A DNA stretch of 64,000 bases, from positions 3,586,689 through 3,650,688 of the forward strand of contig CM074809.1 of the NCBI GenBank assembly GCA_037447605.1, written 5' to 3'. The stretch's first letter is position 1. Each line of letters begins with the position of its first letter. A program made the translations under genes and the position numbers. The DNA comes from Zygnema circumcarinatum SAG 698-1b. Its lineage: Eukaryota; Plantae; Zygnematophyceae. Shown here one piece after another: positions 4,158 to 46,700 of the stretch. Under the pieces are notes generated by a model, which saw only the letters and a list, made by a program, of their open reading frames with translations, was not told where the DNA came from and did no database searches.

Positions 4158-4193
<36 letters not shown>

Positions 4194-5439: not shown

Positions 5440-5477
<38 letters not shown>

Positions 5478-6954: not shown

Positions 6955-9900
6955 CTGTGTCTCGCACTGTCTCTGTCTCTCTGCCACTCTCTGTGTCTCT
7001 CTCTGTTCATGTCGCCCTCTGTCTCTGTCTCTGTCTCCGTCATTTTCTGTCTCTCTCTGTCTCTATCTGTCCGTCTCTCTCTCTCTCTCTGCCCCTGCCC
7101 TATCTCTAGCTCACTCGCCCACGCGCGCTCCTCCCTCTCTCTCCGTGTGTCCGTTTTTTTTTTTTTTGCTGGCAGCAGAACATAAGCAATCGAACCTGTG
7201 GAGTCGTGGTTTGAAAAAAAAGCAGAAAACGGGACCGAAAAAAAAAAAGACATAGAGATTGGAGTTTTGAAACTTTTTTGAAACTTTTGAGGTCTTTGAG
7301 TCGACTGTGAAGGAGCCCCACTTACAGAGGTGAGTTCTGCCCGAAAAATTTCTGCCCGGAACGAAAAAAGAAAAGCCCGGGCAGCAAAAATATTGCGAGC
7401 CAAAAGGGAATGAATCCGCTGCCGGCTCCCGCCCAAGTGATCAGCTGTGACACGTGTCACACCCCATTTGTACCCTTCAGAAACTGTCAATTGGAAAACC
7501 CACATCACCCTAACATACGCTAAATTCCCTAAACCGTGAAGGTTGATAAAAGGCAAAGGAAGCAGCGGAACAATGGAAACCCTAATTCTGGAAACTGAAC
7601 AAACCCTAAAATTTGAGGTATGCCCCAAAAAAAAAAAAAACTCACTATGGCAGCGAAGGCGTTGGCCCCAATGGTGCCGCCCCAATGGTTTGACCACTCG
7701 ATTTTTACCTGTTCCATGAGCAAAGATCAGTTCAGTTCAGTTCAAATCCCAGTTCCAGTTCCCTTCCGTTCATTCGTTCGCTGTGTTTTGAAACAGCAGT
7801 TTCTATGCGAGGAAGGTTTCAGGAGCTTTACGGCAGATAGGTGTGAGGGTTTTGGGGAGAGGGGGAGAGGGGGAGAGGGAGGGAGGGAGGGAGGGAGGGA
7901 GGAGGGAGGGAGTGGCGGAGGGAGGGAGGGAGGGAGGGAGGGGAGGGAGGGAGGGAGGGAGGGAGGGAGGGAGGGAGGAGGAGGGAGGGAGGGAGGGAGG
8001 AGGAGGGAGGGGAGGGAGGGAGGAGGGAGGAGGGAGGGAGGAGGGAGGGAGGGAGGGAGGGAGGGAGGAGGGAGGGAGGGAGGGAGGGAGGAGGGAGGGA
8101 GGGAGGGAGGAGGAGGAGGGAGGAGGAGGGAGGGAGGGAGGGGAGGGAGGGAGGGAGGGAGGGAGGGAGGGAGGGAGGAGGAGGGAGGAGGAGGGAGGGA
8201 GGGAGGGAGGGAGGGAGGAGGAGGAGGGAGGGAGGGAGGGAGGGAGGGAGGGAGGGAGGGGAGGGAGGGAGGGAGGAGGGAGGGAGGGAGAGGGAGGGAG
8301 GGAGGGAGGGAGGGAGGGAGGGGTGGAGGGAGGGTGGAGGAGGAGGGAGGGAGGGAGGGAGGGGAGGGAGGGAGGGAGGGAGGGAGGGAGGGAGGAGGAG
8401 GAGGGAGGAGGAGGAGGAGGGAGGGAGGGAGGGAGGAGGAGGGAGGAGGGAGGGAGGGAGGGAGGGAGGGAGGAGGGAGGGGAGGATGGGGAGGAGGGAG
8501 GGGAGGGAGGAGGGAGGAGGGAGGAGGGAGGGAGGGAGGGAGGAGGGAGGAGGGAGGAGGAGGCAGGGAGGAGGAGGGAGGGAGGGAGGGAGGGAGGGAG
8601 GGAGGGAGGGAGGGAGGGAGGGGAGGGAGGGAGGGAGGGAGGAGGGAGGAGGGAGGGAGGAGGGAGGGAGGGAGGAGGAGGGAGGGTGGGAGGGAGGGAG
8701 GAGGGAGGGAGGAGGGGGGAGGGGAGGGAGGAGGGAGGGAGGGAGGGAGGAGGGAGGGAGGGAGGGAGGGAGGGAGGGAGTGGAGAGAGAAAGAGAAAGT
8801 GAGAGAGAGAGCGAGAGAGAGCGCTCGCTACCTGCTCCTCCTGTGAGAGCGGCTGCCCCCCTTTCGAGTAGCCCCCTCCCTGGCGGACTGCCTGCGGGAG
8901 GAGGAGGCCCGCCATGGCTGCCGGGACGAACATGAAGACAGCGACCTCGGGACGCGCGTTCCTGCAGCAGAAAGTTAGGGTTCAGGGCCAGAATTAGGGT
9001 TAGGGTATGAAGGCAGAGGTTAGGGTTCAGGGCGAGAATTAGAGTATATTGAGCAAAGAAAGGTCTGGACTGATGCTCGCAAAGACCACTACAACCCTAA
9101 AATTTTGTATGCCTAAGGTTCATGAGTGTAAGGAGGCTACTTCCAAACCCTAACGCTTACCAGCTCATGTAACGTTTAGATGAGGAGACTCGAACTATGG
9201 CGAGAAGGACGGGAAAAACAATAGCCAGGATCCAACTCAGAACATAAAAGAATCCTCCTGCATACAATTAGGAGAGTGACGGAACCGAGCCCTGCCCGTC
9301 ATTTGGGTCAGGTGAAAAAAAAAGGCACGCCCATGTTTTAAAAAACAATCCTAAAGCCTCAAAATGACTGAAGGGAGACTCACCTGTCACGAGTTCGTCG
9401 TAGCGCTTTGCAGGAGTCTCTGCTCCGGAGGTTGCCTTAGAGGCTAAATGTGGCATAAGGGAGACGAGGCCAAAAAGGGAGAAATGGAGAGCAAATGCAA
9501 TTGGTCGGGAATAGTAAACCTGCAAAAACCCAAATCCCAAACAAAAAGCAACAAAGGTATATTGGTACAATGTGTTGAAAGCATACAGAGTATGCAAAAC
9601 AACAAACATTGAGTCTGACCCATAACCACAACATACAATAGTTCATAGTATGACTCTCTATACAATGCGAAGCATGGGAAACGAATACGACAGGCCCATG
9701 CAAGCCATGCAAAGCGGCTTAATGCCGCCTTGACGCGTCACGGCCACAGGTCGCACGGACGTCAATCGAACGGCGGAGGCGGCGGTGCGACTGAATCGGA
9801 CGGCGCGCGATAGATTCGTCGCACCCACTGTCGCCGACCGTGCGATAGGACCAATGGACGAGTCCCGCGACCTATGCGACGATCCATGCGACGCCCGTGC

Positions 9901-11338
9901 GACTGTCGAGTCCCTCCCCCCATAGAGCTTTCTACGAGGAATCCAACGCTCCCCTCCACTACTAAGCGAGTCCTTACCAGAAAAGGAACGGATTTGCCAT
10001 CCCAAATGGACGTTACCCAAAGGCTAACAAACTAGAACTATGGAACCCCTATATAGCTACCTCCATCCATAAGGCCTCAAGGTTGAAACCCTCAGCATGC
10101 CCACCAACAACAACATGCGATATATAGTACACCCCCCATGAAAGCCCGATCCTAGCCCGGGGCCCTCCTAAAGTTTGAAACCCTCCCCATGCCCACCAAC
10201 AACAACATGCGATATAGTACACCCCCATGAGAGCCCATGAAAGCCCCGTCCTAGCCCGCACCACGAGGAGGCCCCACAGGTCGAAGAACACGGGAGTGCC
10301 CTCTGCGCGCCGCGGCGCCGCCCACGATTCGCGGCGCCTCTCGCGGCGGCTCTTCAGCTCGGGGGCGGCCGCAAAGCCCGCGATGAGAGGGAGGAGGTTG
10401 TCCCCGCGGGACTGCAGGGACCCCGGCCTGCAGAACAAGCAAAATGGGAGAGAGAGAGAGAGGGAGGGAGAGGGAGAGAGAGGGAGAGGGGGAGAGAGAG
10501 AGGGAAAGAGAGAGAGAGGGAGAGAGAGGGGGAGAGAGAGGGAGAGAGAGAGAGGGAAAGAGAGAGAGGGAGAGAGGGAGAGAGAGAGAGGGAAAGGGAG
10601 AGAGAAGGAGAGAGAGGGAGAGAGAGAGAGAGGGAGAGGGAGCGAGAGAGAGAGGGAGAGAGAGAGAGAGGGAGAGGGAGCGAGAGAGAGAGAGAGGGAG
10701 AGAGAGAGAGAGAGGAAGAAGAGGGGAGGGGAGGGGGGAAAAGGAATATCCTTGGAGAGTTTCGAGAAAGCTTAACCTAAAGGGCATCAAAAAAAGGGAG
10801 GGAGAAGAGAGGGAGGGGAGCAGGCGAGGGATGAACAAGAAAAACAAACATTTCTGAAACTGAATGCACGTGCGTAAGAAAGGCGGCGTCCAAGTTCACT
10901 TTTGAAGTTTCCCATGCTTGCCAAGAGTGATGTATGGGAAGCCAACCAATGATGAGAAAAGCTTCGACCAGAATTTGCTCACAATATGTTTTCCGGTGTG
11001 TCGAAGGGCGTGTGATAAAAGTAGCCGCGCAGCGTTGTGACCATATCCAGTCCCGGCACATCGTCAAAGTCGCGGCACATGATTCGGTAGTCCGTCTCTC
11101 CGGGCACCAGGGGGAACACATCCTGCCACGTGGCAACCTCCCATTGGCTTCAGCAATCTGGAGGAGTCAGAACCCACATCTGTAGCATAGCGTGACAGAA
11201 GACTGAATCGAGCAATTCATCGTCTGTTTTACGGATAACGGATATCTGTTAATGGGATATAGACTTAAAGCACCTCCATTTTTATCTTGCTTGTGGGAGA
11301 GTGAGAGACAGTGGGAGGGAGAGGGTGTGTGAGAGGGG

Positions 11339-11390: not shown

Positions 11391-14300
11391 CTGGGCAATG
11401 ACGGTGGACATTGGAGCGACGGCTGACTCTCCGTACACTCGAGAAGGCCACGTGCCCGGTCCTGATTGGACCACAGTATCTGCCCCCATCCAAACAAGCA
11501 AACTCAAAAAAATAAAAATAAATAAAACAAGCATTTTGAGGTTTGAAGGGAAATGAAAGGACCTCAAATTCCCTACTATGGTTGCATTAAAAAGGGGTCA
11601 AAAACGGAAGAAAAGGATTACCCGGTAAAGCACTCCCGGATGCCTCCAAATTGATCATTGCTCCCACTTGCTCGGCCCACGGATGCGTCTTCACAAAACC
11701 GTGAACTGCCTGCGAGGAGACCAATACATGCTAATTCATGGCTAATTCATGGCTAATTCATGGCTAATTCATGGCTAATTCATGGCTAATACATGGCTAA
11801 TTCATGGCTAATTCATGGCTAATTCATAGCTAATTCATGGCTAATTCATGGCTAATACATGGCTAATTCATAGCTAATACATGATGCCATTTGGATGGAG
11901 TATAAGGGTTTAGGTTAGAGTGACAAAGCCCTAAGGCTGAGTCATGGAAGGTTCTTGGGGATTTGATGATAGCCCGGGGTGGCAAAGCTTCAAAAAATTA
12001 GGGTTTTTATGGCATGTCCATTTCCCATGCAACTCACCTTGAGGAAAATTTCCTCTCCTCCGTTGAACAAAAAGATCACCGGCGCCGACGGGATGTAGTC
12101 CGAATCCACAATTTGGCGCAGGACTTCCAGCATGCATGCTGCAGTTCCATGCAGTTCCCACCGTTCAAGTGAATCAGTTTAGGCTTTCCAGAACAGCAGT
12201 GAGCTCTAGTTTGCACAGAAAATATGCAAGTCTGGACTTCTTAAAAATGCAAAACCTCAGATTTAGAGATCTCTTTGAGCCACTGACTCAGCACAATCTC
12301 CTCCCCTTCCCCGGCCTCCTTCCTACCCCTCTCTCCCCTACCTTTTCACATCCTGTCTCTCTCCCCCGTTCCCCCTCTCTTTCATCTCCCTCCCTCTCTC
12401 CTCATTCTCCGCCTTCCCTGTCTCTCTCCATCAAGCCACAACTACGACATCCATTCGTGTATCCCTTCACAAAATCCCTCTATCTCCTCCCTTTGGGCAG
12501 GCAAAACATTTCATCAATGCATCCCCCCTCTCTTCTCTCTTATCTCTTCTCTCTCTCCTCTCCCTCTATCTTACTCTCTCCCCCCCTCTCCCTCTCTCTT
12601 TCCGCCCTATCTCTCTCCTCCCTCTCCCTCAATCTCTCCCCCCTCCCGCCCTCTTTTTATCTCCTCCCTCTCTCCAGACAGGCAAAACATTTTGAGCTGA
12701 CCGACGCATGCAGCGCAGTCGCTGGCCCCCGGGGAATGCAGGCCCGAATCGAAGTGGCCATTCACAAGAACAGCCGCTCTATCGGGAGCGGAATTTGCAG
12801 CCGAAATTCTGGCATAGAATAGGATAGACATTAGCATCAAACGTTTAGAACTTTTAGAACTTTGAACTCCTTCCTCTCTCACCACTCTCCCACCCCCACT
12901 CTCTCTGTGCGTCTACATGTGCTTTCTCTCTGCGTCCTCAATACATGCCTCTCCGTCTGCCTCGTTCCTCTCTCTCCGCCCTCAGTCGGTGCTCTCGTCC
13001 TCTTCATCTACCTCTCCACTTCCTTTTTCAGTAGATGGTCTCTCCCCCTCCGTTTACTTCTCCGACTTCTCTACAATTGTTGCTCTCTCGCTCTCCCGCT
13101 GCCCGTCTACCTCCTACCGTCTTTCCTCCCTCTCTCGAGTGGATCCCTCTCTCTCCCCCTCTACCTCTCCTCCCCGTCTCCGGTTGTTGCTCTCTCCATC
13201 TCCTCCCCCTCTCCTGCTCTCGCCTTTTCCTATTGTTGCTCTCTCCTTCTCCCACTCCTCACCCTCTCCACTTGTTGCTCTCTCCCTCGACCTCTCTGTC
13301 TACCTCCCCCCCCCTCGCCACCCGCAATAGCCATTCTCTCCCTCTTCCCCTTTCTTCTCTGTTGTCACCCCTTGTCCTTCCCTCGCCCCTCTAATCCAAC
13401 TCTAATTCAAATGCGCCTTTTTCTATGACATAAACCACCACAATGCCAAACCTATTCAGAAAAAACCGACCAGTTTTCAGTTTTTGTCCGCAAACCTGAC
13501 GGCGATGTTTGTGATGTTCTGGTACGCCATCGTGACAGTTCGCGTCACGAAGGCGGGAAGGTTAAAGGACCCGCTCACCAGGGACTCGTCGATTTCAAAT
13601 CTGACAGCCTCAAAATTTACACCCCGGGGCTCCATTTTTAATTCATACATACAGTTAATACATCCCTAAAAGACGTAAGTGCGGAGGGAAGATGCCATCG
13701 GTCCGAGTCTTAGAACTCCAAGTTTGGAGAGCGATAAGTTCCTAAGCGAATTGATGGAAACTAGGTCGCATTTGTCTGGTCTGTTTAGTTCGTTTAGCAT
13801 TCAAAGAAGACCCCTACTCCTTGCGGTTATGATTATCTCCTATTCCGTGGCTCAATAGTATACTAAAAAAAAAAGGGTAAAGAAAGTAGAATGCAACGAT
13901 TATCTTTCACATATACCTCAACTTGGAGCTTGCCCTCTCCTTTAATTTTTCAACTTCTGATTTCAAATAGTTTTTCGCTTCCAACAGTCCCGGAGAACCC
14001 TCCTGCATCACCACAAAGGTGATTTATACCCGTCAAACATTTCTAAATTGAACATTCGTTGATGTTTATTTTGTGTTTCATTCCTTCCAATTTTTTCTTT
14101 TCGTCAGACGAAGATGTTAATGGGCATGCGGCTTTAGTAAATTTAAAATTTCAAGTTTCTTGACGGGGTTCAATTGAATAGACTTCGGCCCTAAGCACGC
14201 GAGAGAGAGAGAGAGGGGGGGAGGGAGAGGGAAAGGGTGCTTCCGGCTGCACCTGGCGGCCTCCAATGTCCCCCGCCAGACGCTCCACGTGGCGCATGGC

Positions 14301-21428: not shown

Positions 21429-24400
21429 TCACAGCCGGGCCCCGACGGGGGCCTCGCGATGGGTAGGGCTCCGCCCCATGCTGAGGGAGGGGAGAGAGGG
21501 GAGGGGAGAGGAGGGGGGAAGGGGAGANNNNNNNNNNTTCAAGTTGGTCTTCTTGAACTGCGCTTGGTCCTTCTTGAACCACTTGGCGAGCAGGGCCAAA
21601 CACGTGTCGCCAGAGGCCACCGTGAAGACGGTCTTCGAGCTCCCCGTGCAGGCCCGCGCAATGGCCTCAAATGTGGTCGCCGAAGTGCATATCTGGGAAA
21701 TAAACAACCTCAACCAATGATATGGCAGGAGCAAAAGCAAGGGAAGCGAAAGTTGTTTCTTGTACGGAGTCTCTTTCTAAAACCTAAACAGCAATGGTGA
21801 CATTCCTCATGGCATCGGTTCTCTGGATTCAGATCGCAGAGTTTACGCAGCTTTACAAGTGTGAAATTGGCACAGGTGAGTGAATGGCCGCTTACCTCTT
21901 GCCCAAACGGAACAACACCACTCGTTGGAGGAACGAGGCGTGCGCAGTTGATGGCGGGGTTCACGGCATAGAACTTGGCGGCGGTTCCGTTGAACAGCGA
22001 CGTGACAATGCTTGCACACGTGTCACTCGCGCCGGCAACATACGATGCGTTGCAGAGCGGATTCTCCAATGGCGTGCCTCGCGTGATGCAAATCTGGAGG
22101 GTAATATTGTGAGAAAACTTCAACGATGGCGCCAAACATGGGTTTAAGTCGCTTGGAAAGAAAGCTGACTAATCCGACACTTTGAAAGAATCATCATTAC
22201 GATGTCCACTACAAGATGCTGAAATGGTGGTCATAATGCAGACCTTCGGTAGCCGAATTTGGTAACAAACCTGCTTTCCTCCCTGCAACGGGTTTGTGCA
22301 ATTGAGATTAGGGTTCTGGGAGTTTGTTCCCCCGAGGACTGTGCCAGCAGGGAGGTTGAAGAGGGCAGCAATGGAGGTGCATGTGTCGCCCTGCAGGAAA
22401 GATCAAAGCAATGGTCATATCAAATGACACAGAATTGAACAGAGAAGTTTCCAAAAGCGTCTAACGACATCCATGATGATGAATCGACAAAACGAATTCG
22501 TTCGTCAAAACCAACTGTCAACTGATTACCGGTCAAAATATCGAAAACCAGAGAATAGACAATACCTGATTGATAGTGTACGGGAGCGAACAGCTCCATG
22601 AGTTTGTGATGTTTATCAGAGTCGAGGCAGGGAGGACATTTGAGCAGTTAACACTCTGCAATCGCCGACAAACAAACATGTGTCAAATTCAAAAGTCAAG
22701 GAACTCAATGCATTCCAATGCTGGCAACAAAGATGTTCGCGGGTCGGGCTGCAATTTACGAAACAGACAATACAAAAAGACCAATCTCGGCCATAGACAC
22801 TCACTGGACGCTGCTGACGTATGAAGGCGGAGATGCTGATGCCATGCACATCCGCCAAGAGGTCGCAAGTCACTATCGGACCGGCAGGAACACTGAAGCT
22901 CTGAAGGCCCTGCAGAGGGGGCACACCTGCACAATGGCGGGACATAGAATGTTATTTCCTGCATCACATTTCTAAGGAAACAGGAAACCATCAACCTTCT
23001 TCAGAGCAGACAGTTTCGTTAAGTTTCAGTTCTTCCGTTTGCACTTTGAACATTACTTTTCGCGAGGATGTAGTCGGCGACAATGGTACATCGGAATCTG
23101 GCAAAGCTGCTTGGGACGAATGTTCTAGAGGGTTCTTGAAGTGGCATGAGGAAGCCTACCAGAGCGACACGTGGCACTACCGTCAAGGGTGTACTGAGAG
23201 AGGCTAAACCCCGAGGGGCAGAGACACGTGTACGCGCCGGAGGAGCTGCTGATGTCGAGGCACAGTCCAACGCCGCACGGGTTGGAAGAAAAGGACGCAC
23301 AAGTTGACGCTGCAGACATTAAAGAAAGAAATAGGGGGGAGGAGCGGCGAGAGGGGGGAGAGGGCGTAAAAGAGAGAGAAGGAGAGGACGAGAGAGAGAG
23401 AGGTGGGTTAAGAGGACGAGAGAGTGGGAAGGAGAGACAGTCTTCTCAGAACGAACCATCTTATTCACGCCCTACGCATGATGAGAGCCGTGCTGCATAC
23501 TGCTAGGGTGCTGTTACTTTCTAGAGTTTTTCAGGGTTTGTCAACGTTACATAACTTCACTAGATCATATCAGCACTACCCAACATGCTATGAAGATGGG
23601 CTTACCGGGAATGCAGGTCTGGGAGCCATCGCTGTTGTTGGCGGCAGCGAAGTCGGCGGGGCACAAGCAAACATTGGTGAGGCCGGAGACGGTGCATGTT
23701 CCCCCCCCGCAAGGGTTGGAGGTCCCCGCTCCCACACTGTTGTTGGGGAGCTTTATGGCGCCATAGCTATTGGAGCCGCAGGGGTTGCTTCCTGCATGCA
23801 GATGACGACAAGGAGTCATAAAAAAGGAATTGAAATAGTAATTTAATTTGGAATTACATTACTGTGGGTGTTCTCATGCTTGGTTGAATTTGCAGCACAA
23901 CAACTTATATTCGTAAACGAACAGGGAAATAGCGAAAAAATGCCCCCAGAGGAGCTGGCGGAGCCTCTCACCCTTGACAATGGGAACAAGAGCAGGAGTG
24001 CTAAACATTCCACACGTGCCCACTCCTCCTCGGATGGAGATTCGCATGAACCCTCCCTCACCCCAATTGATGCCCCAAGAATTTTTTATCAACATATACG
24101 GAGGAGTTGTTGTCAGATTGTAGCCTAGCACCACCACATTGTGGTTCACGCCACTCTTATAGCATGTGGGGTTGTCATAGATATAGCCCTGCACATTTAC
24201 AAGGAAAGTGTAAGCTCGATTCTCGTACTACGGAACAAAAATATAAAGGACGTGTAATTTCGAAAATTATCACATAGTGAATATGGTTTTTGTTGTAAGG
24301 AGGTTTCCAGGTTCATCTTTCAGGTTATCCCTTTATGCTTGTAGGGATCGCTCGCTTGTAGTGAATGTAGCATTCCTCACCCCCTTGTAGTCGATGAAGG

Positions 24401-27400
24401 TAGGGGCAGAGGCATCAATGGAGACTATGACCGGCCCTTGTAGGAGTGCCAGGAAGATGCCCAGCAGTCCGAAAAATCGCACTTTTTCGTATGATGAAAT
24501 GCCAAACGCTCCGGAACCCTGCGCTTAATATTGGAGCAGGCACATAAGGTTTGCTGTGTGAGAAAAAACTCAAAACAACATCGGGTGATTGAACTTGTCG
24601 AACACCCACTTTGGAAAGTATTGACAGAGGGTGAAAGCGAAAATAGGCCAACTTCTGGAGTTATCTGCAAGAAACAATCAAATCTCTGAGAACCCTCGTG
24701 TTTTCTAGTTTAAAGTGCACCCTTTATTTGAAGAGAGGCTTAGTGGAAGTCAAGGACATTGAATTCCGCGGCTCAGCCAAAGTATTGTCATAAGTGAAGG
24801 ATTCTTAAATGACTCACCGAGACAACATTACATGCTTGAGGAGTCCCGCTGTATGGCAGAGCGGCTTCAGTGGTCAGCTTCTGCCCAGCTGCATACTCCA
24901 AAACATCGATTGGGGAGCCTCCACTACAGGGCTTTGAAGTCCCCTGGCAGTCCAAAATTTGCTGCACGGAGACCTTAGGAAGAACATTGCCTCCATTTGC
25001 AATGTAGATGGCAGTCTCCATGGATGAGATCGGAGCAAAAGCCCAGCTGGAACCTGAAGATTGTAAGAGGATGCAGTGGAGCATGAGCTCAATGTGTGTG
25101 AAGTGATTACTTACGGTTTTATATCACAGCCTCACAAATTTCGAGTCGCAGGATTCGCAGTGGATACTTGCACTCATGTGACTTAGAAATTTCTAAGGAC
25201 TTAACCCATCACCTCAGTGTACGCTGATGTACACCGTTTTCGGATGATTGATAGGCGTAAGCGATTCTTGAATGTAGTTAATTAGAGATTCCTTTGCAAA
25301 AATTTCATCAGCAAACCAAGCTCTTATCACACCTCATAACTGGTAACCTAAATCTTTGCCGACCTTGAGAAGTATTGCAACCTACCGCACGTCTTCTGGT
25401 CGCGCACAGAGCCCGCGCCTCCCTGCTCTGCCCAGCTCCACTGCGGAGGCACACTCCACCTGCCGTTAGCAGCGCTATATCCCAAACTCGAATAGCGGAA
25501 GAATCGGTCTGAGTATCTGGGAGTAGTGATGGCGGAAGGGGCCAAACCCGTGCCCTTTGTGCCAACTGCATCACGACCACAAAAGATCGAAATTTTACAT
25601 CATTTTCCATCGACATAGCCCCCTGCGAGTGGGACCGGCTGCCGTAAGCGATGGGATCTAAGAGTTCATGTAAGAATGGGAACAATGGGAAACAACTACA
25701 TAAAGGAGGGGCTCGAAATGTTTGTTTTCAACTGACTTTCCACTGTTATTTCTCATTGGGAACATAAGTTTTCAACCGGATCCTGACCATTCTCATTGTG
25801 ATTGCTTCTGGAATATGAGACTCCGACGATGAAATCCTTGACATGAAGCTGCTTTTTCAAACTACAGAAAGCTGAAGGTGCCTACCAGCCACGCAGATTC
25901 CGCTGTTGATAAAGCTGTTGTAGCCGAACACGCAACTGCATGCAGCCGCCGGCGAGGCTCGGGTTCGAAGGCATGTCCCCTGACTCGAGCACGCGCCCAA
26001 GGGCTGAGTCGTGTTGCAAAAGGCAATGCATTCGGAGAGACTCCTCTGCGTGTCTTGGGGACAGAACAGATCTTCGCTGAACATGCAGTTGTTCGCAAGA
26101 GCACCCGCGGATTGGCAGTATCTTGAATTGCTGTCATACTGGTAATAAAACGTAGTCGTACCATTAAAGTAGTTGTTTCTCAAGTCTACAAATACTTTGT
26201 CATAGGTCCATGTGTTGAACTGTCCCGTTAAAAAGTTGTTTTGAAGCCACCTGCAAAAGGAGCCAGACTGTGTTTAGGTCCAGAGGGAGGCAAGTCCGTG
26301 AAAGTTCACAAGAGCATGTGCAAAGTGTTTGTTGAACAACTCATTTGACGCACATTAGTTCGAATTTAGTGTTCAAGTAAACACCATGCATTAGGTTACA
26401 GGAGAAGGGACACATGGCTTACAAAACAGAAGGGAGGCGAGATGTAGGCACGGTCCCAACAAGTTCATTATCATTCAGATATCTGCGCAAGTAGAGGACG
26501 CCTTTTAAAAGGAAATGGAGCATACATAGTCTGTTTTCGCTGAATGATTGAAGTGCTCTACCGAAAATTGATTCGAAATCGAATCGACGTTCAACTGATT
26601 TCGAAAGTTTTTTTTTTTTGAACAGCCAAAATCTTTACTTGTTCAATTTTTCAAACTGCATAAATATCAAGCCCTCAGCAGGCTAAGACCAGCATCCCAA
26701 GATATCTGGAGTCAGAATGGGAAACCCAGGGACACTCACATTGAAAACATCCCTGCGTAGCTATCCAAATAGTTCGGTGGTATGCTTGTGAGCCTGTTGA
26801 AGCTAAGGTCCCTGCCAAACATTTCATACGATATCTAATCGTTAGCAATTTCCAGAGACCTCCAAAGTCCTTTCCAATACCGCGGTATGTTCAAAGAAAC
26901 TGAGATGGTCAGCTTTAGAGGTCTGAGTCATACAACGTCCGTGTATAATATCCGACATACGCAGGAACTGCTCCTGAGAAGTTGTTGTTATTGAAATACC
27001 TGCGACAAAATGCACATTTTCAAACGGTATTCATTGATGGCAATCTAAATTTCCGATTATCGGCATCGATCGCCTCAAATGAATTGAACACAAATTCATT
27101 CTTACAATGATATATGTGTCACCTGTAGCGTGCGAATGGGTATGATCAATCGACCAATTCAGCCCCCCGGGCTGAACACAGAAATTTGTCCACATAATTT
27201 TCCAGTCAGCAAGTGGGTTAGAGAGCTCACAGGCGCATCCAATAGCAACAGTCGGGGAAACGAGGAATAGTGCCAGTCAGCTGGTTGTAGCTTAAGTCCC
27301 TGAAATTCCAACCCACTTTGAAGGAGGTCAATCTTTACATCAATCTCTTGTATTATTTTGACCTGATGAGCCAAATCTTTTTTAGCGTTCTCACACCGAA

Positions 27401-30400
27401 GAGCTCTGTGAGCATTCGTGATAGATTGTTTTGCTCACATGTAGCGCACGGAGGTTGTCGTAAATTGTGGTAATATTCCAGTAAGCTGGTTGTTTGACAT
27501 GAGCCTGATGATAACAACGACAGTCGAAACCGTTAAGAATCGGAACTAACTTGTGATCGAGAGAAGTGAAAAGTTCTCAGGTTGAATCGAAAGTAAGATC
27601 ATGTGATGATCGATCATTTTTCATACGTACATTCGAATGTTCCTTCCAAAAAGTTTATTTGAGTACACTCACAACACATAAATTGATAGTTTGGTGAGTG
27701 TGGTTGGGAAGCTCCCGTTGAACCGGTTCCCTTGAAGATCCCTGGCATATGCGTCCATTGCGCATACAGAAAACATGAGAGGGAGAGCTCAACTGTATTC
27801 TCAAGCGCTCATTTTCTACATAGGAGGTATCGCGTGTAAATAGAGAATTGAAAACGACTTACAAATACTGGAGGCTGCCAAGTTTGCTGAATGTGGTTGG
27901 AATCGGACCAACGAGATTGTTGTTGGCAAGGGTCCTGTGGGCCGAAAAGCCAAACCTTGGAGGGCTTCATGAGCCATGAGGGGCACATGCATGGCAATCG
28001 CTAGGACCTTTCGAAGGAGCCACAATGTGAATCTTCAACTCGTCATGTTATACAGAAATGAGTCCCCAGCCTATACTCTTGCAACGACCATCTACGAATG
28101 CAAAAACAAGCAAGGATTTTCCCTCACAAAAAGTTTAACGAAGCCAAGTCTCCAATGCTTGCTGGAAGTACTCCGCTCAGGGAATTATTTGTCAAGTACC
28201 TGCACAAACCCGAGCCAAAAAGGAATAGTGAGCTATGGCAAGGCAAGGGTATGCAGTCAAAGACGGAGCCCCACCATCCTTTCCAAGTGCAAGAGAGGTC
28301 TCATCCTCCAAAAGACAGAAGGAAAAAATCTGAAGAAGAAAAAGTTCACGCCCAAATGTAAGCGGAACAGAAGGTAGCTTTGATTCCCCTTCGTCCTTGG
28401 TCTCTACTGTATCTCAGTGAGACACTTACAACCCAATCATAGATGTGGCTTTGCCGATCTCAGCAGGAATGCTTCCGATTAGTTGGTTCTCTACCGCGGA
28501 CCTGAAAAGGAAGCCATAAATTTTTAAGATCCTACTCAAGGGCAGTGAAAAGTGAAGTGCATTGCAAACACGTCTTGAATTGCAACTACTAAATTTCAGT
28601 CAGGATATAGGCACCTTTGTTTCCCTATGGTATTCAAAGTACAAAGGGAAGAAGCGCAAAGAAATAAAATGGGTCAGTACTCACAGGTACTGGAGATTGG
28701 ACATTAATTTGACAGTTGTTGGTATCGTGCCAGTGAGTGAATTCGTATCAAAGGTTCTGTAGGCATAAAAGAAGAGCGTGTCAAGGGTATTGCATCTGAA
28801 AATGACACGTACAGCGACAAGCTGAGCTCTATTACCTCTCGGACAGAACTAACGTGCATGATTTCGTCCTTATCATAACCACAGATTCCCCTGAGAAGCA
28901 CACTTCCACTTACACACTGTTGAGATAAGTAAGACTCCCAATAGAGGCTGGTATCCTTCCGGACAATCTGTTGTTATTTAAGGATCTGTAAGGTGGCCCA
29001 TGAAAGAATAAGAACAAAATGTTAGAGAACTATGCATTATCGAAGCGGGTTTCATGCTCAAAATAACAGCCATGTCTTCCGGGGAGCTTGGGCAACCAAA
29101 AGAAATGCCACCCTTGGGGCTAAATCAAGACATTTACTGCCCCGTCTGGCAAGAAGCTTTTGCCTTATCAGCGTTTCTTCAATAATGTCATTCCACAAAG
29201 AATATTGCAATCTTCTTGCCAAAATAATGACTTGTTGTGCGATTCGATTACACCAAAATGCGCTCGGAGGAATCAAGGAACTTCTCACAAGTTAATCAAA
29301 TATGTGATGTTGCCGATGCTACTGGGAATGGTGCCAGTGAGCTGGTTTGAACCCAGGTCCCTGCCAACAGATCAAACATCAAAGGGGTATTGGGTGCAGT
29401 CAACAGCCTCGGACGTACAGCAGGTAGTCACAAGCGCCTCACGTGAAAGTAAAGCAACGGTTAGCTTGGAAATCTTCAGCTTTTTCTGAAGATTTCTGAG
29501 AATTGACAGAACAATGACATCCAGTTGCTTGGAAGCTTCTCGCCTTCAAATTCTGCCACATGAAAAGTCAAACCATGACGATGGAACAAAACAATTGCTT
29601 CATGACAACGATGCCTAGATACGTGCACTTCATTCCAGGTTCTAAGTGAGGGCAAATTGCAAACTGGACAAGAATTCTTCAGAAAGCGAAGTATATGTGA
29701 ACTAATCAAAATTACATGCCAATGTGCATTGCCGAAAAGCATAGGGGTCCCCCAACACCTTCCCCAAAATTTTCAACCGTGTTCGCAGACTCATCATATC
29801 TTCTCTGTGAATGGATGGCGTGAACCAAGAAAGATTGCCAAATGGTTGAGCTGCAAATTTAGAAGAGGAAACACGTTTCAACAGCAAAGCGAGCGGAACC
29901 GTACAAGTATCGCAAGCCTGTCATATTGCCAATGTCTTCTGGTATGGGGCCGCTGAGGCTGTTGCCGGATAGTTGCCTGTCACCCCCATGTGGAAAAGCG
30001 CGAATACATTCAGGTTCATCCAGGCCATTGTCAAACTATGCACCACATTTGACCCACTTTAAAAACTATTTCTTTTCGAAAACAGGTTATCTACTGAGGA
30101 CCAAAGCGTCGCAGTAGTGCCTGAACTCGTAGTAAACAGATGCTGGATTAGTAAGAGATCGGTTAGACGTACAGCGAGTAAAGGTTTTGAAGTGCGCTCA
30201 GTGATGCTGGTATACTTCCATTCAGCGACATGGAAGACAGATCTCTGTGCAGCCATGAGGACGAGTTTCAAATTTTGCATTAATTCCAGTCCTGTAATAG
30301 CTGACATTGTACCTATGACGACTGCAACGACCACAACTCCCTAAACAATGAATAAATCACGTGAAAACGCATCCATGTGCGAAAAACTTTAGATACCATG

Positions 30401-33400
30401 AAAATGGCAGGCATAACAGGATCATTTCGCTTAAGAACTCGTATAGAAGTTGAAACAAACTAGCAGTAACGTTTTGAACGATGCTTTGGATGCTTTCTTG
30501 ATACTGGCCGATACTGATTTTTACATGGAGACAGACAAACCTATGTACCTTTCCACTCAACACAGGCACAGATCTAAAAGTTGTCTGCAAAAATCAATTG
30601 TTGAGTACGCACAGTGTCGAGAGATAGATCATGTTGCCGATGGATGACGGTATGCTTCCGTAGAGATTGTTGGGATAATTGATCACCCTGACGTCATCCC
30701 AAAATCCACCATTTTAACATCTTTTTGTGCTACACACACCATCGGAAATAAACTGTCACCACCGTACGAGCTAATTCGATGGCAATCACTGAAGGGGGTT
30801 CCAGCATGGCAGGCATGATTGTTATCTTTAAGATTTTCTCACATTTGGAGGACACATCGGACATCTCAGGCGTGTACAGATACTCAAGAGTGATCCATAA
30901 GGTCTTGCGAGGGTTATAAAGGATAGAAGAAGATCATCAATAGCATACAAAAAAAATCGCTCGCTACTGCATCAAATGGAGATGGGAAAGTGAACGTAAA
31001 TAGACTTACAGACTTCCCAGCGCAGTAAGGTTCCCAATGTTTGCGGGAAGTTCTCCGGTAAGAAAGTTGTTTGCCAAATTTCTGAAACGTGAAAACGAAT
31101 GTACCATAGACATGAGCATTCTGCAATCGCTTAAACTATTTTTCCTTATGTCAGGAAGATTTTATTTGTGCGGCTCAGGGATTTTAAAGGGTGCACCGAT
31201 AGAACCAAAAGAGCAGTGACGCAACAAGACAAACATGCAGAGTCATTTCAGATATTTTTTCGTCGCAAAAAACGGCACTTACAAGGAGGCTAAGTTAAAC
31301 ATGTTTCCAAACGTGGCCGGTAAGGTTCCATCCAAAGCATTGTCCTGAAGCGATCTGGTGTAAAACCCGAAACTCACCGAAAGCCATACTTTAGGAACTT
31401 CTAATTCTAAGATCTGCATCATGTGTGTGATGCTCTCACCATATGCCATAAAGTAAAACAAATTTTTAACAGGAGAGAATGAGGAAGCCCAACAAGGCAG
31501 TTAAATATCCTCCAACAAGTCATGTAAAACTCAACACTGCACTCCCGCTGAAAAACTCAAGTTGGCTTGATTTCTCAAGTCACTATTGAAGCTGAGCAAA
31601 AAACTATTCCATCAGCGTGCGTAGCAAATGCATAATGCATGCACGATGTCCACTTACAAGCTTCTAAGGTTTACAAGATTTCCAAAGGATGAAGGGACGG
31701 ATCCTGTAAAGTAGTTGTTAGCCAATGATCTGCAGACAGGCCAGTATATCAATTAGATCCTAAGAATATTCGCAAAAGAATTTAATCGCATACATTCTTA
31801 CAAAAATCACGCCTCCGATACACTGCACCCTTAAATAGCCCATTTCAAACGGTATTGAAATACTCACAAGTCAGTCAACATGGTGGCGTTTCCAAGACTG
31901 TCTGGAATGGGACCTGTCAAGCGGTTATTATACAGATACCTGCCGATGAGCCCAAAAAGCACGCATGGCGCCAGGAAATTAGACATGAGTGAACCAGAAA
32001 TAAGTGCAATGGCAAGTGCATCAGTAGCAAGAAACGCAAAGTACCAAAGTAGAGGCATATATGAACTTACAATACCGTGAGCTCCTCCAGTTTATTTCCA
32101 AAAGTTGATGGCAGTGATCCAAACAGCTTGTTGTCATTCAAATAGCTGACCTTGCCTCTCCCACAATCCGCACTTTTGTGTTAATGGTAAAACTGACTGG
32201 CTAGAATTGCATGCATTCGGTGACATCACACCGATTGCTCTTTACTTCTAAATCACAGCTTGCCTCCTGCAGAGCACCAGTCTGGGGTTTTTTTGACTGG
32301 CTGATTCAATACATCGAAGCAGCATGCGCTTGTTTACATGCATTGAATGCTGGACAACACGTTATTACAAGGATAAAAAATACTGCTGAGTAACAACTGA
32401 CCAGTTTCTGGGACTAAGTCCTAACAACACAACGTTTTACAACCCAAAGCATCACCACCATCACACCTTCCTCCCACCCGCCCTCCCTCCCTCACTCCGT
32501 CCCCCCTCCCTTCCTCCCCCCCGCCCTCCCCCCGCAGACCCTCCCTCCCTTCCTCTCTCACTCCAATGGCGCTCACATGTTTTGCGCGTTCACAAGGTCG
32601 CCAAGCTCCGCTGGGATTTGTCCTGTCAGCTGATTACCTGCGAGATTCCTGGCAAAAGAGCAGCAGACCAAGGAGCGATAATCCACTAGACATTATCTTC
32701 TGCCGTTACAGCCTCCACGCTAAGCAAGTACAGCCACTAATCGCGGACAAAAAATAGGGAGAAACAAATTTTCAAACTTTTTAATCAACGAATGAAAAAT
32801 TAATGCTCGAAAACTCGAAAAACATAATCATCTCACTTACAAGGTGACGAGATTGACAAGTTTCCCTAAGCTCGACGGTATTCTCCCCGTTAACCTACAG
32901 TTGCTAAGATCCCTGCAACCAATGCAATAGTAACAGATGGTGATGTGAGGCACGCCAGACGTCACCAAGCCACATTTGCGTACCTTTCCGGTAAGTTCTG
33001 CCTGAATCCAACATCTCAGTAGAACCATCAAGCGCCATCTATGTAGCAAAAATATCGAAAAGGTGCAAAGCTTGATGTCTCCAGACAGAACGAGAGAGCC
33101 TCTCACAATTTTGTCAGGCTGATGATGTTTGAGAGCCCCTCAGTGAGCCGCGACTGCACGTTCCTGCAGCCATATAGGCACTTCCTTTATCAGGCATTAC
33201 CCGGACAAGCAGCCATGGTTAACCACATTTTCAACTGAGTCTTTTCCTCCTGTGCCGCAACGAGACTGGTCAAAAAACCAGAGATCTTTCAAAACCAGAC
33301 ATGACCCTGAACCCTAAACGGCCACCTCTGCAGGGTCCAGTCCTTACGCAAGATTGAGCTCCACGACCTGCCCGCCTTCGCAGACCACATTCGCCCAGTC

Positions 33401-33701
33401 GGCGCAGTCCCGCTTCGGCTCCCACGTCTGAAAGGACTCCCAATTCCACCACAAGTTCGCTGCCTTGAACTCCAAAAGCGCCGGCACTGAGCCGCTCCCC
33501 TCCCCCCCACCCCCCGCCACGTGTCAGCCATTCCCTCCCTGCCGACGGGCTTCAGCCATGCCCACGTGGCAGGGGGGGGCGCTCCGTACGCTGCCACGCA
33601 ACGATGGGTTCGGCGGCGGAGGGCGCCGCGGCGAGCACGTGCAGCAGCAGGGCGAGGAGAGCCCGCCACGTGGCGGCACGGGAGGAGGGCGCCATGGCCA
33701 T
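21429..33701 (-). CDS. Secreted mosaic protein: signal peptide - LRRNT - ~20 LRR - EGF-like - papain (C1A) domain with catalytic Cys>Ser - EGF-like repeats - 4 LysM; about 33 exons
   Basis: Exon 1 (33701-33590) MAMAPSSRAATWRALLALLLHVLAAAPSAAEPIVAWQ; exon 2 (33486-33348) LRRNT W..W....C..W..V.C; then LRR, C1A, EGF and LysM exons, all with canonical GT-AG and compatible phases. The 3' end is uncertain because of the gap at 21528-21537. Confidence 0.9.
21528..21537. other. Scaffold gap (10 N) at the end of the last LysM exon
   Basis: N run. Confidence 1.
21538..22926 (-). other. Four tandem Cys-containing LysM domains (exons 22926-22805, 22655-22566, 22390-22271, 22093-21896, 21692-21538)
   Basis: FSVPAGPIVTCDLLADVHGISISAFIRQQRPSVNC; CSLPYTINQGDTCTSIAALFNLP..NPNLNCTNPLQGGKQIC; CNASYVAGASDTCASIVTSLFNGTAAKFYAVNPAINC..GQEIC; FTVASGDTCLALLAKWFKKDQAQFKKTN. 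Confidence 0.8.
23160..23791 (-). other. EGF-like exons (23791-23606, 23309-23160)
   Basis: NPCGGGTC..VCLCPADF..QTC and NPCGVGLC..YTCLCPSGF..ATC. Both are phase 1-1 exons. Confidence 0.85.
23972..25565 (-). other. Papain-family (C1A) domain exons (25565-25386, 25053-24818, 24518-24381, 24188-23972)
   Basis: WSWAEQGGAGSVRDQKTCG|SSWAFA, SVQQILDC..CSGGSP, GPVIVSI, VNHNVVVLGY, IKNSWGINWGEGGFMRI..GTCG. Confidence 0.92.
26140..33163 (-). other. Plant-type LRR array, one repeat per phase-2 exon
   Basis: 17 exons of 66-75 bp (12 of exactly 72 bp), e.g. 32912-32841 DLSNCRLTGRIPSSLGKLVNLVTL, 31939-31868, 31729-31658, 31354-31283, 31081-31010, 29976-29905, 29360-29289, 28985-28914, 28756-28685, 28501-28430, 28199-28128, 27934-27863. 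There is also a 57-bp first LRR exon and two more repeats in exon 26250-25886. Confidence 0.92.
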
Positions 33702-40791: not shown

Positions 40792-43700
40792 TCACTTTCG
40801 ATAAGTCATCGACCGATTTCCCGAGCGTGGAAACACTTGGCTTCGCTTCCCCCCTTTAAGCCCATCCTCCTCCTCCTCCCTCCCATCCCCACCCCTCCCC
40901 CTCCCCCTCCCTCCCCTTCCTCTCGCCCCCCTCCCTCTCTCCCCTCCCGTTCCCTTCCCGCCCACATCTTGATGTATGCGTTCCCGGCTTCTACCATCAA
41001 TGCCCCCCATATTCAACCGTTTCCGGGCAGCTGCAAAATCATAAGCAGGAAGATCGGTGTTCTCTCCTTCCCTGACGACCGGTCCGTTATTTGCAACTTC
41101 CACCCCCGGTTCTCCGTTTAACGGATTCCGTGCAGCCAAGCTCCTGTTTCTCTCAGAGTCATCATCAAGGGCCTTCCCTCTCCCCACTCTTTTCCCGCCG
41201 TCTTCTCTCTCCTCCATCTTCTTCCGGTCTCTCTTCCTTTGCCTTCGAGCTTTCTCGGACAACGAGAGGGGAAGTCCACCTTCTCCCACTTCTATGTCCA
41301 TGTCTTCCCGTAATTCTCCCTCTCCTTTGCCTCTCTTCTCTGACCCCTCTCCCTCCCCCTGGACGTCTCTCTCTCCCTCTCTCTCTCCCAGCTCTACCAC
41401 ATCCTCCAACAAGAGCACGTCTTCTCCACTGGCTGCATCCCCTCCCTGCCCTCCCTCTCCTCCACTTACTTCAATGTTGCTGGTTGTGAAATGGAAATGC
41501 CCATTTCTGGTGGCTGCTTCGGAAGACGCTGTTTTTTGCATCGAACCGCTCAGTTCTGCTGCATTTGTTTCCTTTTCCTTTCCTTTTCCTTTTCCCGTTA
41601 TCGCTGTCGTATGATGTTGCAGGAACGGAAGACTCATTGTACTTCGAATTTGGTTCGCTATCGCCATTGCTCGAGCTTCAGCTTCCGTGCCCTGTCGTAA
41701 ACGAGAGAGAGAGAGAGAGAGAGAGTTAGAGGGGGGTTGGAGAGAGAGTGAGACAGAGACAGAAGGGAGAGATAAGGGGGAAACAAACTGACCACATTCA
41801 GCTGAAAGATTCCCCTTCTTCTCAAATTGGGGGCTAAGTGTAGGGTTTCAACCCTCACCTTCCCTTTAAGACCACCGTTTCCGAGAAAAGTTGCAAGACC
41901 CCCTTTAGCAGGCCTTAGAGAAACCACCGCCTTTCTCCTGCCATCTTTAGTCTCTCCCTCCCCTTCCCTCTCTCCAACCTTCTGCTCTCCTTCCTCGCCC
42001 TCTTCCTTTCCCATTATGCCTTCTACCTCCCTCGCCGCAGCCCCTCCCAATTTCTCACTGCGACCTTTCTCTCTGGTCATATCCTCCCGCTCTCCCACCT
42101 CCACCTCGACTTCCGCTCTCGGCCCTGCCACCTCTCCTCCCTCCCCACTCCCATTCCCTTCTTGCCCACATTTGCCATTACTTTCACTCTCTTCCATGCT
42201 ACCAAAAATCATCCCTGGTTTGCTAGCAGTCAGCTTTCCGCCATTTGCGCTTTCCACCCTTTCCTCTTCTTTCTCCTCCACCCCCGTTCCAAGTCGAACA
42301 AAGTCCTTCACCGGCACTGCCCTCCCACTCTCTGCACTCCCTCTCCCAAGTTCTGGCCTCTCTCCCACATCTCCTAACCTCACAGATGGCCTCCCTCCTC
42401 CCAGTAGTGCAGCAAGCTTACTTGACTTTTTGGCTACCACTTGGACTTGCTTCCTGTGATTGTTAGCAGCTTTTTGCTCTCCCTTACCCACGTCATTCTT
42501 TACTCGTTGAGGAACCGCCATTCCCATCTCCCTCTCACCTTCATCCCCCTCTCTCCCACCATCGCCTATTTTCTGTTCAGCAACATCTCCAGTACTGCTC
42601 CCACCATCATCCTTTCCTTTTCCTTTCCTTTCCTTTTCCTTTCCTTTCCTTTTCCTTTCCTTTCCTTTCCTTTTCCTTTTCCCGTTATCGCTGTCGTATG
42701 ATGTTGCAGGAACGGAAGACTCATTGTACTTCGAATTTGGTTCGCTATCGCCATTGCTCGAGCTTCAGCTTCCGTGCCCTGTCGTAAACGAGAGAGAGAG
42801 AGAGAGAGAGAGTTAGAGGGGGGTTGGAGAGAGAGTGAGACAGAGACAGAAGGGAGAGATAAGGGGGAAACAAACTGACCACATTCAGCTGAAAGATTCC
42901 CCTTCTTCTCAAATTGGGGGCTAAGTGTAGGGTTTCAACCCTCACCTTCCCTTTAAGACCACCGTTTCCGAGAAAAGTTGCAAGACCCCCTTTAGCAGGC
43001 CTTAGAGAAACCACCGCCTTTCTCCTGCCATCTTTAGTCTCTCCCTCCCCTTCCCTCTCTCCAACCTTCTGCTCTCCTTCCTCGCCCTCTTCCTTTCCCA
43101 TTATGCCTTCTACCTCCCTCGCCGCAGCCCCTCCCAATTTCTCACTGCGACCTTTCTCTCTGGTCATATCCTCCCGCTCTCCCACCTCCACCTCGACTTC
43201 CGCTCTCGGCCCTGCCACCTCTCCTCCCTCCCCACTCCCATTCCCTTCTTGCCCACATTTGCCATTACTTTCACTCTCTTCCATGCTACCAAAAATCATC
43301 CCTGGTTTGCTAGCAGTCAGCTTTCCGCCATTTGCGCTTTCCACCCTTTCCTCTTCTTTCTCCTCCACCCCCGTTCCAAGTCGAACAAAGTCCTTCACCG
43401 GCACTGCCCTCCCACTCTCTGCACTCCCTCTCCCAAGTTCTGGCCTCTCTCCCACATCTCCTAACCTCACAGATGGCCTCCCTCCTCCCAGTAGTGCAGC
43501 AAGCTTACTTGACTTTTTGGCTACCACTTGGACTTGCTTCCTGTGATTGTTAGCAGCTTTTTGCTCTCCCTTACCCACGTCATTCTTTACTCGTTGAGGA
43601 ACCGCCATTCCCATCTCCCTCTCACCTTCATCCCCCTCTCTCCCACCATCGCCTATTTTCTGTTCAGCAACATCTCCAGTACTGCTCCCACCATCATCCT

Positions 43701-46700
43701 TTCCTTTCCTTTCTACCACGGAAATTTCCTTATTTAATTCCTTCGTTTCTTGCCTTTCATCGACTTTACGAGTGGTTTCAGCTGCCGGAGGCCGTTCGAG
43801 CAACTGTTTAGGAAGAACTGCTTTATCTTTTGCCTCACAGATAATCTCTACAACTGCTGCTGCGTTTTTTCCAACTAATGGAGCGCTTCCACGCAAAACT
43901 GAATGCAGGGAACGAACGTCCGATGGCATATCCTCCGCTGCAAAAACACACTTTTTAGAAAAAGTCAAAATTCCGAGTGTAAATTGAAAATTTAAATGGT
44001 TTGAAGTTTGGTTAAAACTAAATAGACTGCTTTTGCTATTTGTTCAATCATGCCCTCCCACTCACCCAGTCGGAGGAGGAGATGGTTCGGCATAACATAG
44101 GCGGTGCTTTCGTCCTCTTCACGAGCCATTCGGTCTCTCCATGCGTAAAGGCCCTGCAGGAGACATCATGACATGTGTCACACTTCACGTTTGAACAAAC
44201 AAGGAATAAGAGAACAATCATGATAATTCTACCTGAGTTTAAGAACTAAGTTCGGCGATAACTAAAGCAGGGTTCAAGCGGTTAAGCCAAATCAGACGCA
44301 AATTGTTCCATACATTAGTGTCTCGCGTGCAATCATCTTTCTCCGTGATCAATGCATTATCAATGTTGTGTTCATGATGTCATTGTGTTCTAGACTGCAT
44401 GACGCCTGAACCACGCAACATCACAGAGAGAGCGAGAGAGAGAGAGAGAGAGAGAGAGAGCTGGAATTTGGGAATGTTAAGGATGAACAAGAGTTCAATT
44501 ACTGACCGCGAGTACGGCCTGCTGATGAGGAGCCAAACTCCTGCCAAGGGACCTGCTAATCCGCCCACAGCAATGCTATTGGCAGTCTTTAAACTCAGAC
44601 TTAACCAACAAAGGCTTGATGCCAAACTCAAGTAAAGAGCTGCCTTTACCATCCCTCACATTCCCTCCTTACTGAACTTCTTTAATATGCCATAAAGCGA
44701 GAAAAAAGAGAAAGCGGAGAGCGAGTGTGAAAAGGAGAGGCAGAGGGCGAGAGAGAGAGAGAGTGACCGCAAAAAGGAACATCACATAACAGATATCCTT
44801 TCCACTTTAGCTCATCACATGAATGGCAAACTGTATGGCAAGATGAATGCGAATTCTCACATGTACAGCTTCAAATAAGAGGTTTCCGTAAAGATGTCCT
44901 TCTCGTACAACTGTAAGCAGATATTCCGGCTGCGATGAAGCACCTGCCATGCATGCCAAGCCCATCAAAGGCAAATACTCGCTTCATTCCTATGGAAGAA
45001 ACGCTCCCCTCCTTAGTCCATTTTCATTAACACAAAGTTCGAAACAATTCACAATTTGGCTTTCCATCAAACATTGGCCCAATTCTCCTCATCTCTCTCC
45101 CTTCTCCCTTTTCTCCCAAACGAGCCCTCACCTCCAAAACGAGGGAGTTTCCTGTCTCCTTCTCTTCTCCTTCTCTCAGCAGCCTAACTCTTAGCTGGTC
45201 GTAAATGAACAGCAAGTAGTGGGTGTCCTCCCGCGCATATCTGCTCAAAGGAGAAGAGAATGTCCTCAATAAAATGAACCGAAGCACTTCCTGAATCCTG
45301 AAACCCCTTTTGACCTTTGACCTATTTCAGGGCCCTTGGGAGGGGGCTCACTCACTTAAGCATTTCGGGTGGAAAAGGACGAATGCGCCAATCTGCGAGC
45401 TGGTATCTGCATAGAAATGACGACGGGTTGATTAATGACATTAAACACAACTGAAAGTAAATCAGATTTCACACGTAGCTTGGGTTAAACAGACTCTTCT
45501 TTAATGACAGAGTACTACTGAGCTAATACAGGGACGGACCTCTTATCTGCCGCCACCTGGCAAAAATGGTGGAGGAGAAATGCAAGGCTGTGCGATCCCA
45601 TTTGAAGAACTCGTGACGCCTGTCACTCCGCAAATCATAAAAAGGAATAAATACATGACAAAAAGCACTTCATGAAAAATGTTTCCGCATATTTGATGAC
45701 ATGTAGCGTCGAACACAGTCGTTTGATTTTAGTCATCCTAACAAAAATGTGGGCATGATCACTGACTAATCGGCTAACAAAAACACATATTACCTGACCA
45801 GTATCAAAGAGATTTGCGACATATATTCCGAAATCGCATTGTAGCCACAAGATGTCTCGATCTGCCCCATGCATCACCTGCAACGGAACAAAAAAAAAAA
45901 AGGGTGAACCAAACCACTCTTCATAGGGAAAAGTCAAAACAGCGAAAGTTTAAACGATTTTGCAGTAGTGTGAGCCGCAACCCGTCTAATCCTCACCTTA
46001 AGTTTCCGATGATCGGCAAAAAGGGGGCCAAGGGTGGGCCCCACATGGCTGCGGAGGGCCAAAGTGTCGACAACAAAGTCTTCATCTCGGGTGGATATTT
46101 GCATGAGACAGACAAATCCCTGAAAGGAGCGGTAGCTATGGTGCTCCAAATCAACCTGCCAGTCAACAAGCAATCATTACTGTCGTCTCCCGTTGACTTC
46201 GCCAAAATTTAGAGAATCTGCGTTATCTAACGCCGCGTTTCTTTCATGACAAAGGAGAAAAGGGAAGATGAACGGAAGAAGGTGGTGAAAGCGCACTGCA
46301 AACTCCTGCACAGCCTGCAGCTTGGCAGCCATGGCTTGGAGCTCCGGAAGCGTTTCGATGAAAGTGAATGGTGTCTTTTCAAGCGGGAGAGGTGATCGTA
46401 TTGAACCCTCAATTTCCAACTGCCAGTCGGGATACTGCAAATGCAATAACTGCGCCTGATAGCAAACAAACCACATCTAGGGTTTTAGACGTTTTGGATT
46501 TCCATGAGTTAAGTTTCTTGCATGTGATCATAACATAGTTTGTGGGAATAAACGGTAGCTTGATTGCATGACTTTATCAATAAAGTTTACCACTTTTCTG
46601 CACTACCCAATTTCGACAATTGTGATGCACCCTTTTAAACCCAAATTCCAATAAAGCCCGCTATCCTGCCAACATTGAGTCGAGCCAAGCTGACCCTAAT

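Follow-up and report, generated by a model that had tools for sequence, protein, structure and literature searches.

Gene model and active-site residues

The window analysed here, a stretch of 64,000 nucleotides of Zygnema circumcarinatum SAG 698-1b, carries on its minus strand a gene of about 35 exons, in which neither a frameshift nor a stop codon was found (Table 1). Judged from its translated exons, the gene would encode a secreted mosaic protein composed of a signal peptide, about 23 LRRs, a Cys-rich segment with a weak EGF match, a prodomain-less papain domain, two EGF modules and LysM modules. RNA joints were found in the LRR part (26482->26740 and 26810->26933), on both sides of papain exon A (25565->25886 and 25053->25386) and, in two RNA runs, between exon D and the EGF exon that follows it (23790->23971). 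The original gene model, which let exon D run to a stop codon at 23876-23874, was therefore corrected, as the RNA splices 23972/23791 into the EGF and LysM exons. Among these downstream exons, PF00008 is matched at 4.4e-6 and PF01476 (LysM) is matched weakly. The last LysM-type exon is interrupted by an assembly gap, an N run at 21527-21537 with low-complexity, CT-rich sequence after it, which leaves the 3' end of the model uncertain. Purine-rich (GGGAGG)n and pyrimidine-rich (CTCTCC)n tracts are present in the introns (32470-32560 and 23330-23420). Elsewhere, four blocks of the window show an extreme GC skew unlike that of the rest (4001-6000, +0.50; 8001-10000, +0.50; 12001-14000, -0.40; 42001-44000, -0.44), and the G+C content is raised in the blocks at 4001-6000 and 8001-10000.

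Table 1. Features of the mosaic gene and active-site codons of its papain domain (positions are those of the window)
Feature	Position	Strand	Basis
Start codon	ATG 33701-33699	-	read from sequence
Signal-peptide-like N-terminus (MAMAPSSRAATWRALLALLLHVLAAAPSAA) and LRR N-terminal cap exon	33348..33701	-	read by eye from sequence
About 23 plant-type LRR exons, one repeat each, all frames open	26934..33160	-	exon scan
Cys-rich exon, 121 residues, weak EGF-like (PF00008) match	25886..26250	-	translation, RNA joint to exon A
Papain exon A (FRYSSLGY linker, mature start VPPQWSW, Gln, Cys22, first base of Gly23)	25386..25565	-	translation
Oxyanion Gln19	CAG 25398-25396	-	codon read-out
Cys22	TGC 25389-25387	-	codon read-out
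Papain exon B (SSWAF...CSGGSPIDVLEY...ACNVVS)	24818..25053	-	PF00112; RNA joint 24517->24817
Papain exon C (...LLQGPVIVSIDASAPTFIDYKG)	24381..24518	-	translation; RNA joints 24187->24380, 24517->24817
Papain exon D (His, Asn, Trp), spliced to EGF exon	23972..24188	-	PF00112; RNA
His159 (VNHNV)	CAC 24143-24141	-	codon read-out
Asn175 (IKNSW)	AAT 24083-24081	-	codon read-out
Trp177	TGG 24077-24075	-	codon read-out
Downstream EGF exons (23791-23606, 23309-23160), then LysM-type exons	21540..23791	-	Pfam

The Cys-rich exon sits directly upstream of the papain domain, in the usual place of a C1A prodomain, and neither this exon nor exon A gave a PF08246 match to an I29-type prodomain. Exon A bears at 25460-25500 a short motif, FR(Y/H)xS(L)G(Y/F), that also occurs in the homologs P0016, P0131, P0057 and L001 and that occupies the place of the I29 prodomain in classical C1A enzymes; it could serve as a linker peculiar to this family or as a mini-propeptide. 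No second papain domain was found within the 64-kb window.

On the minus strand, the coding sequence around the active site reads GAC CAG AAG ACG TGC G up to an intron at 25385-25054 and continues as GT TCC AGC TGG GCT TTT. The intron has 332 bases and GT-AG borders and splits the Gly23 codon, and the spliced reading is DQKTCG-S-S-WAF, with AGC at 25048-25046 (minus strand) placing Ser at the position of the papain nucleophile Cys25. The replacement of the catalytic Cys had been claimed in the original prediction and is borne out by the spliced sequence and by both DNA and RNA contigs; the codon read-out likewise agrees with its claim that the oxyanion Gln, the His of VNHNV and the Asn of KNSW are retained. 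Moreover, the six cysteines of the three papain disulfides and the Gly-Gly motif are all intact. Peptidase_C1 (PF00112, curated cut-off 20.7 bits) matches exon B with 52.4 bits (9.5e-14) and exon D with 52.3 bits (1e-13), and many solved C1A structures match these two exons. The C1A profile, His159, Asn175, Gln19 and Trp177 are thus all present, and Cys25 is not. Because Ser (AGC) replaces Cys25, the domain is to be classified, as far as its sequence tells, as a homologue of the C1A family and not as a cysteine peptidase; it combines a Ser in the nucleophile position with a fold otherwise intact, which is how Ser-type C1A pseudoproteases are recognized in sequence.

The serine codon in DNA and RNA contigs

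Contigs from four different studies, comprising two DNA runs (X2 and X5) and two RNA-type runs (X7 and X8), were compared with the window over 23600-27100. The DNA unitigs of X2 and X5 show 0 differences from the window and no branch over 25003-25339. In X7 and X8, all four papain introns are spliced out at GT-AG borders in the RNA contigs; these contigs also join papain exon A to the upstream Cys-rich exon, and two LRR introns are spliced. At the active-site intron (joint 25051->25384, cut +2), the RNA contigs have three forms: GGT TCC AGC, as in the window; GGG TCC AGC, which is synonymous; and TGG TCT AGC. These forms may be paralogs or strain variants, and AGC is kept in all three. The Ser is therefore not confined to a single copy but is carried by the window copy and at least two near-identical expressed forms. 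Since AGC is one base from TGC, a sequencing error had been allowed for in the original prediction, and the window does differ from the compared runs at several nearby places; nevertheless, an error of sequencing or assembly, or a mutation private to the sequenced strain, is hardly credible, because over this codon the DNA unitigs of two studies agree with the window in every base and do not branch, and because AGC recurs in three forms among the RNA contigs of two further studies.

The third of these forms, TGC TGG TCT AGC TGG (C-W-S-S-W), has Trp at the normally invariant Gly23, adjoining the Ser; it outnumbers the other two at the joint 25048/25387 in X7 (depth 77 versus 67.7 and 48.8) and is the sole form listed at the active-site joint in X8 (depth 115). 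In addition, at 23643, 23653, 23657 and 23670 the contigs of three runs, DNA and RNA, differ from the window at full depth, and over 24854-25012 in exon B the unitigs occur in two forms, neither of which matches the window throughout. The reference may represent another strain or a mosaic of close copies.

The same contigs allow a rough view of the constraint on the domain. The papain exons account for 19 of the listed variants (13 synonymous, 6 nonsynonymous), whereas the papain coding sequence has 189 synonymous and 582 nonsynonymous sites. The resulting omega of ~0.15 (binomial P ~1e-4 versus the neutral expectation) is crude, as it rests on these 19 variants, pooled from near-identical copies or strains, and on a listing that omits 16 further variant places of the 3.5-kb stretch. 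Because the variants among the near-identical copies are mostly synonymous, even this crude estimate argues that the gene is not in free decay and that the near-identical copies are under purifying selection. The original prediction had also raised a private allele in a decaying gene; against this stand the DNA of two studies, the three expressed forms, the intact and spliced gene and the synonymous excess.

Cysteine and serine in the algal family

To place the domain, we carried out a full HMMER search with exon B and two profile searches, which recovered relatives in Mesotaenium endlicherianum, several Closterium species and Trinity transcriptomes. These relatives have an LRR or legume-lectin head followed by EGF, a prodomain-less papain domain, EGF and LysM, with the same Pfam sets, and the same architecture is found in the LRR, EGF and LysM exons and the RNA joints of the window. 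Their identity to the window papain domain is 40-47%, and in these searches family members were found only in zygnematophyte-type algae. By their sequences, the algal LRR/lectin-EGF-papain-EGF-LysM proteins are to be regarded as true relatives of the window protein. Members such as Mesotaenium ME000166S01720 and ME000065S09004 and Closterium CLOP_g5629 have the layout and the absence of a prodomain in common with it; the linker FR(H/Y)xSxG(F/Y) before the papain domain is common to the window and its relatives, and the intron splitting the Gly23 codon to the window, L001 and L002. They differ in that most family members have Cys, whereas the window has Ser and nine more departures from family-conserved residues.

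The HMMER search with exon B returned distant relatives only (at most 51% identity), and its Ser-type matches are enriched partly by the Ser in the query, so that counts outside the family are biased. Neither the window's own protein nor a closer relative was found when exon B was used as a query against short proteins (no match). A profile search with the window exons and the family scaffold gave only relatives of at most 47% identity, and a second one was swamped by LRR proteins and revealed no closer relative. In a literature search, no description or function of this papain family was found, the sole related mention being a 2009 remark on LysM+Peptidase_C1 in Chlamydomonas.

Most family members read C(G/A/S)ACW and are thus of Cys type. 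Ser-type members are Mesotaenium ME000065S09004 (P0010, GASWAF), a protein of Closterium sp. NIES-64 (P0209, CADSWAF) and the Logan protein P0165 (CSCSWAT), and the genomic contig L002 (SRR9302961, SSWAVAAV) provides a fifth Ser form alongside that of the window. Gln, His and Asn are kept in the window, P0209 and P0165; His and Asn are kept in P0010, the model of which stops short of the Gln position. The Ser codon in L002 is TCT versus AGC in the window, and the two represent different one-step routes from TGY. The Logan run SRR9302961 contains both this Ser-type contig and the Cys-type L001 (GSCWSTAP). Another candidate for the Ser type, P0033, was rejected as an alignment shift, its actual reading being CAASACW with Cys.

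We then examined the relationships among 45 domains in a careful maximum-likelihood tree, from which the nucleophile column was omitted. P0006, a long-branch sequence (CGSAWAF) that had appeared as the partner of the window in a quick tree, was left out, as this pairing was judged to be long-branch attraction. The family clade including the window is supported at 96/86 and is apart from the classical plant PLCPs. Within it, P0010 groups with the Mesotaenium Cys-types, P0209 groups with the lectin-type Cys members of Closterium and P0165 lies elsewhere; the window falls in a poorly resolved part of the tree, with P0014, P0016 and P0152 as its nearest rows. The tree requires four Cys/Ser changes for its four Ser rows (the window, P0010, P0209 and P0165), and a single Ser clade is rejected, as forcing the four rows together costs 71.7 log-likelihood units (p-AU = 4e-5). 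On the evidence of this tree, Ser would have arisen at least four separate times in the family. In all four lineages the replacement is Ser, yet of the 7 missense codons one base away from TGC only 2 specify Ser. That the Cys always gives way to the near-isosteric Ser would speak for selection that keeps the cleft intact, and against random decay.

It is also evident that the terminal branch of every Ser row in the tree exceeds those of its Cys neighbours in length. The branch of P0010 is 0.44 versus 0.04-0.26 in its Cys sisters, that of P0209 is 0.82 versus 0.32-0.42, and that of the window is 1.07 versus a median of 0.26. Furthermore, the window departs from the family at 10 of the 47 strongly conserved columns (0-7 in Cys-type members), the departures including a change from Asp to Asn at the residue before the His. 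These departures and the long branch could reflect a relaxed constraint over the whole domain and not a new binding role, and part of both the excess of departures and the branch length is due to a sample without close relatives.

Possible roles of a serine-type papain domain

Papain-type enzymes use a thiolate-imidazolium pair, which a Ser hydroxyl cannot form. For this reason the window domain, which has lost the nucleophile Cys to Ser but preserves the other catalytic residues and the cysteines that define the fold, most likely cleaves peptide bonds too slowly to be of use, if at all. Instead, it has probably been retained for its folded cleft, to which a peptide, a protein or an inhibitor would bind, and this cleft would work beside the LRR and LysM binding modules of the same protein. 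On balance we think it probable, though by no means assured, that the domain, like SERA5 and other C1A proteins with Ser for Cys, has been maintained as a binding module that lacks proteolytic activity. A maintained but non-cutting cleft fits best because the fold is intact, His and Asn (and Gln where covered) are retained in the Ser lineages, the replacement is always Ser and the near-identical copies appear to be under purifying selection; the retention of these residues would, however, be equally expected of a working Ser-His-Asn hydrolase.

It is rather unlikely, although the chance is a real one, that the papain domain is a recently disabled, functionless passenger that is degenerating slowly in a member of a large, fast-turning gene family while the LRR and LysM parts still work. 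Such a passenger could have accumulated the departures at 10 of the 47 family-conserved columns and the long terminal branch of the window, and P0010 and P0209, also of Ser type, likewise have longer branches than their Cys sisters, but slow degeneration is difficult to reconcile with six intact disulfide cysteines, an intact Gln, His, Asn, Trp and Gly-Gly motif and some 35 exons without a frameshift or stop. The strong excess of synonymous over nonsynonymous changes within the papain exons of the Ser-bearing copies also speaks against it, as does the finding that the replacement is Ser in every independent case.

That Ser, His and Asn form a working triad is improbable. The domain would then be a weak serine-type hydrolase (a peptidase, an esterase or an enzyme acting on another bond, as proposed for silicatein), and the mosaic protein would still act enzymatically on the ligands of its LRR and LysM modules. 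His and Asn are kept in the four Ser lineages of the tree, Gln and Trp177 are kept in the window, and the purifying selection on the near-identical copies would suit an enzyme as well; the replacement of Cys25 by Ser in papain-type enzymes, however, is known to essentially abolish proteolysis. Silicatein alpha is the second-best solved-structure match of exon D and has the Asn-His (NH) motif in common with it, but this match reflects generic C1A similarity, as the domain falls within the algal family in the tree, and in SERA5 the in-vivo role is non-enzymatic (PMC4671257). In addition, an expressed form that has Trp at Gly23, beside the nucleophile, is hard to fit with a tuned active site.

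The reuse of dead enzymes as binding modules is a recurring theme, for which papain homologues with Ser in place of Cys (SERA5, silicatein and cathepsin L-like proteins of insects) serve as textbook examples. The likeness to Ser-type C1A proteins such as Plasmodium SERA, drawn in the original prediction, is apt, as Ser stands at the Cys position and His and Asn are kept. SERA5, whose role is non-enzymatic and in which Ser takes the canonical Cys position (PMC4671257, PMC5500368), is likewise a papain-fold domain with His and Asn kept, extracellular or secreted and within a larger protein (PMC4671257, PMC5500368, PMC7132891), and in the multigene SERA family, too, members of the Cys type occur beside members of the Ser type. 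The kinship is nevertheless limited to the C1A fold, as the window domain groups with the algal family; it is flanked by LRR, EGF and LysM modules, unlike SERA5, and processing by SUB1 is a feature of SERA. Silicatein alpha of sponges, a Ser-type relative of cathepsin L with reported Si-O chemistry (PMC6233156, PMC7565869), also shows the Cys-to-Ser change with His and Asn kept and ranks high among the structure matches of exon D, but it derives from animal cathepsin L, carries a prodomain and assembles into filaments that template silica, and its resemblance to the window domain is of a generic kind. Exon B finds its closest solved structure in a Tenebrio cathepsin L-like protein (PDB 3qj3), which also has SSWAF and is of Ser type; it differs in being an insect midgut protein with the classical pro-cathepsin L layout, and it is related through C1A only.

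A further comparison concerns plant immunity. In tomato, Rcr3 is a bait for pathogen inhibitors and is guarded by the LRR receptor-like protein Cf-2. The likeness of Rcr3, a secreted immune PLCP (PMC7382257), to the window protein is conceptual: both would be extracellular papain-fold proteins, valued for being bound by inhibitors and paired with an LRR protein. Rcr3 differs in that its catalytic Cys and its prodomain are kept and in that it and Cf-2 are distinct polypeptides. The original prediction had suggested that the domain may bind substrates or trap protease inhibitors of pathogens. To ascribe a decoy role to the algal papain domain would be speculation by analogy, and we see only a slim chance that the Ser-type domain is an integrated bait that captures microbial protease inhibitors or protease-targeting effectors. 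If this were true, the protein would unite in one molecule the guard and the decoy of the Rcr3/Cf-2 pair, such an arrangement would already exist in the algal sister lineages of land plants, and the recurrent Cys-to-Ser changes would be repeated conversions of an enzyme into a bait.

As a kind, Cys-to-Ser C1A homologues are already known, and what is new here is a streptophyte-algal member in a new setting. The Ser alone is thus a modest finding, and its value lies in the family context. A family with at least four independent replacements offers natural pairs of enzyme and non-enzyme of one architecture. Such pairs would be useful for understanding what these mosaic proteins do at the cell surface in the algae most closely related to land plants, and they bear on whether decoy-type immunity predates land plants.
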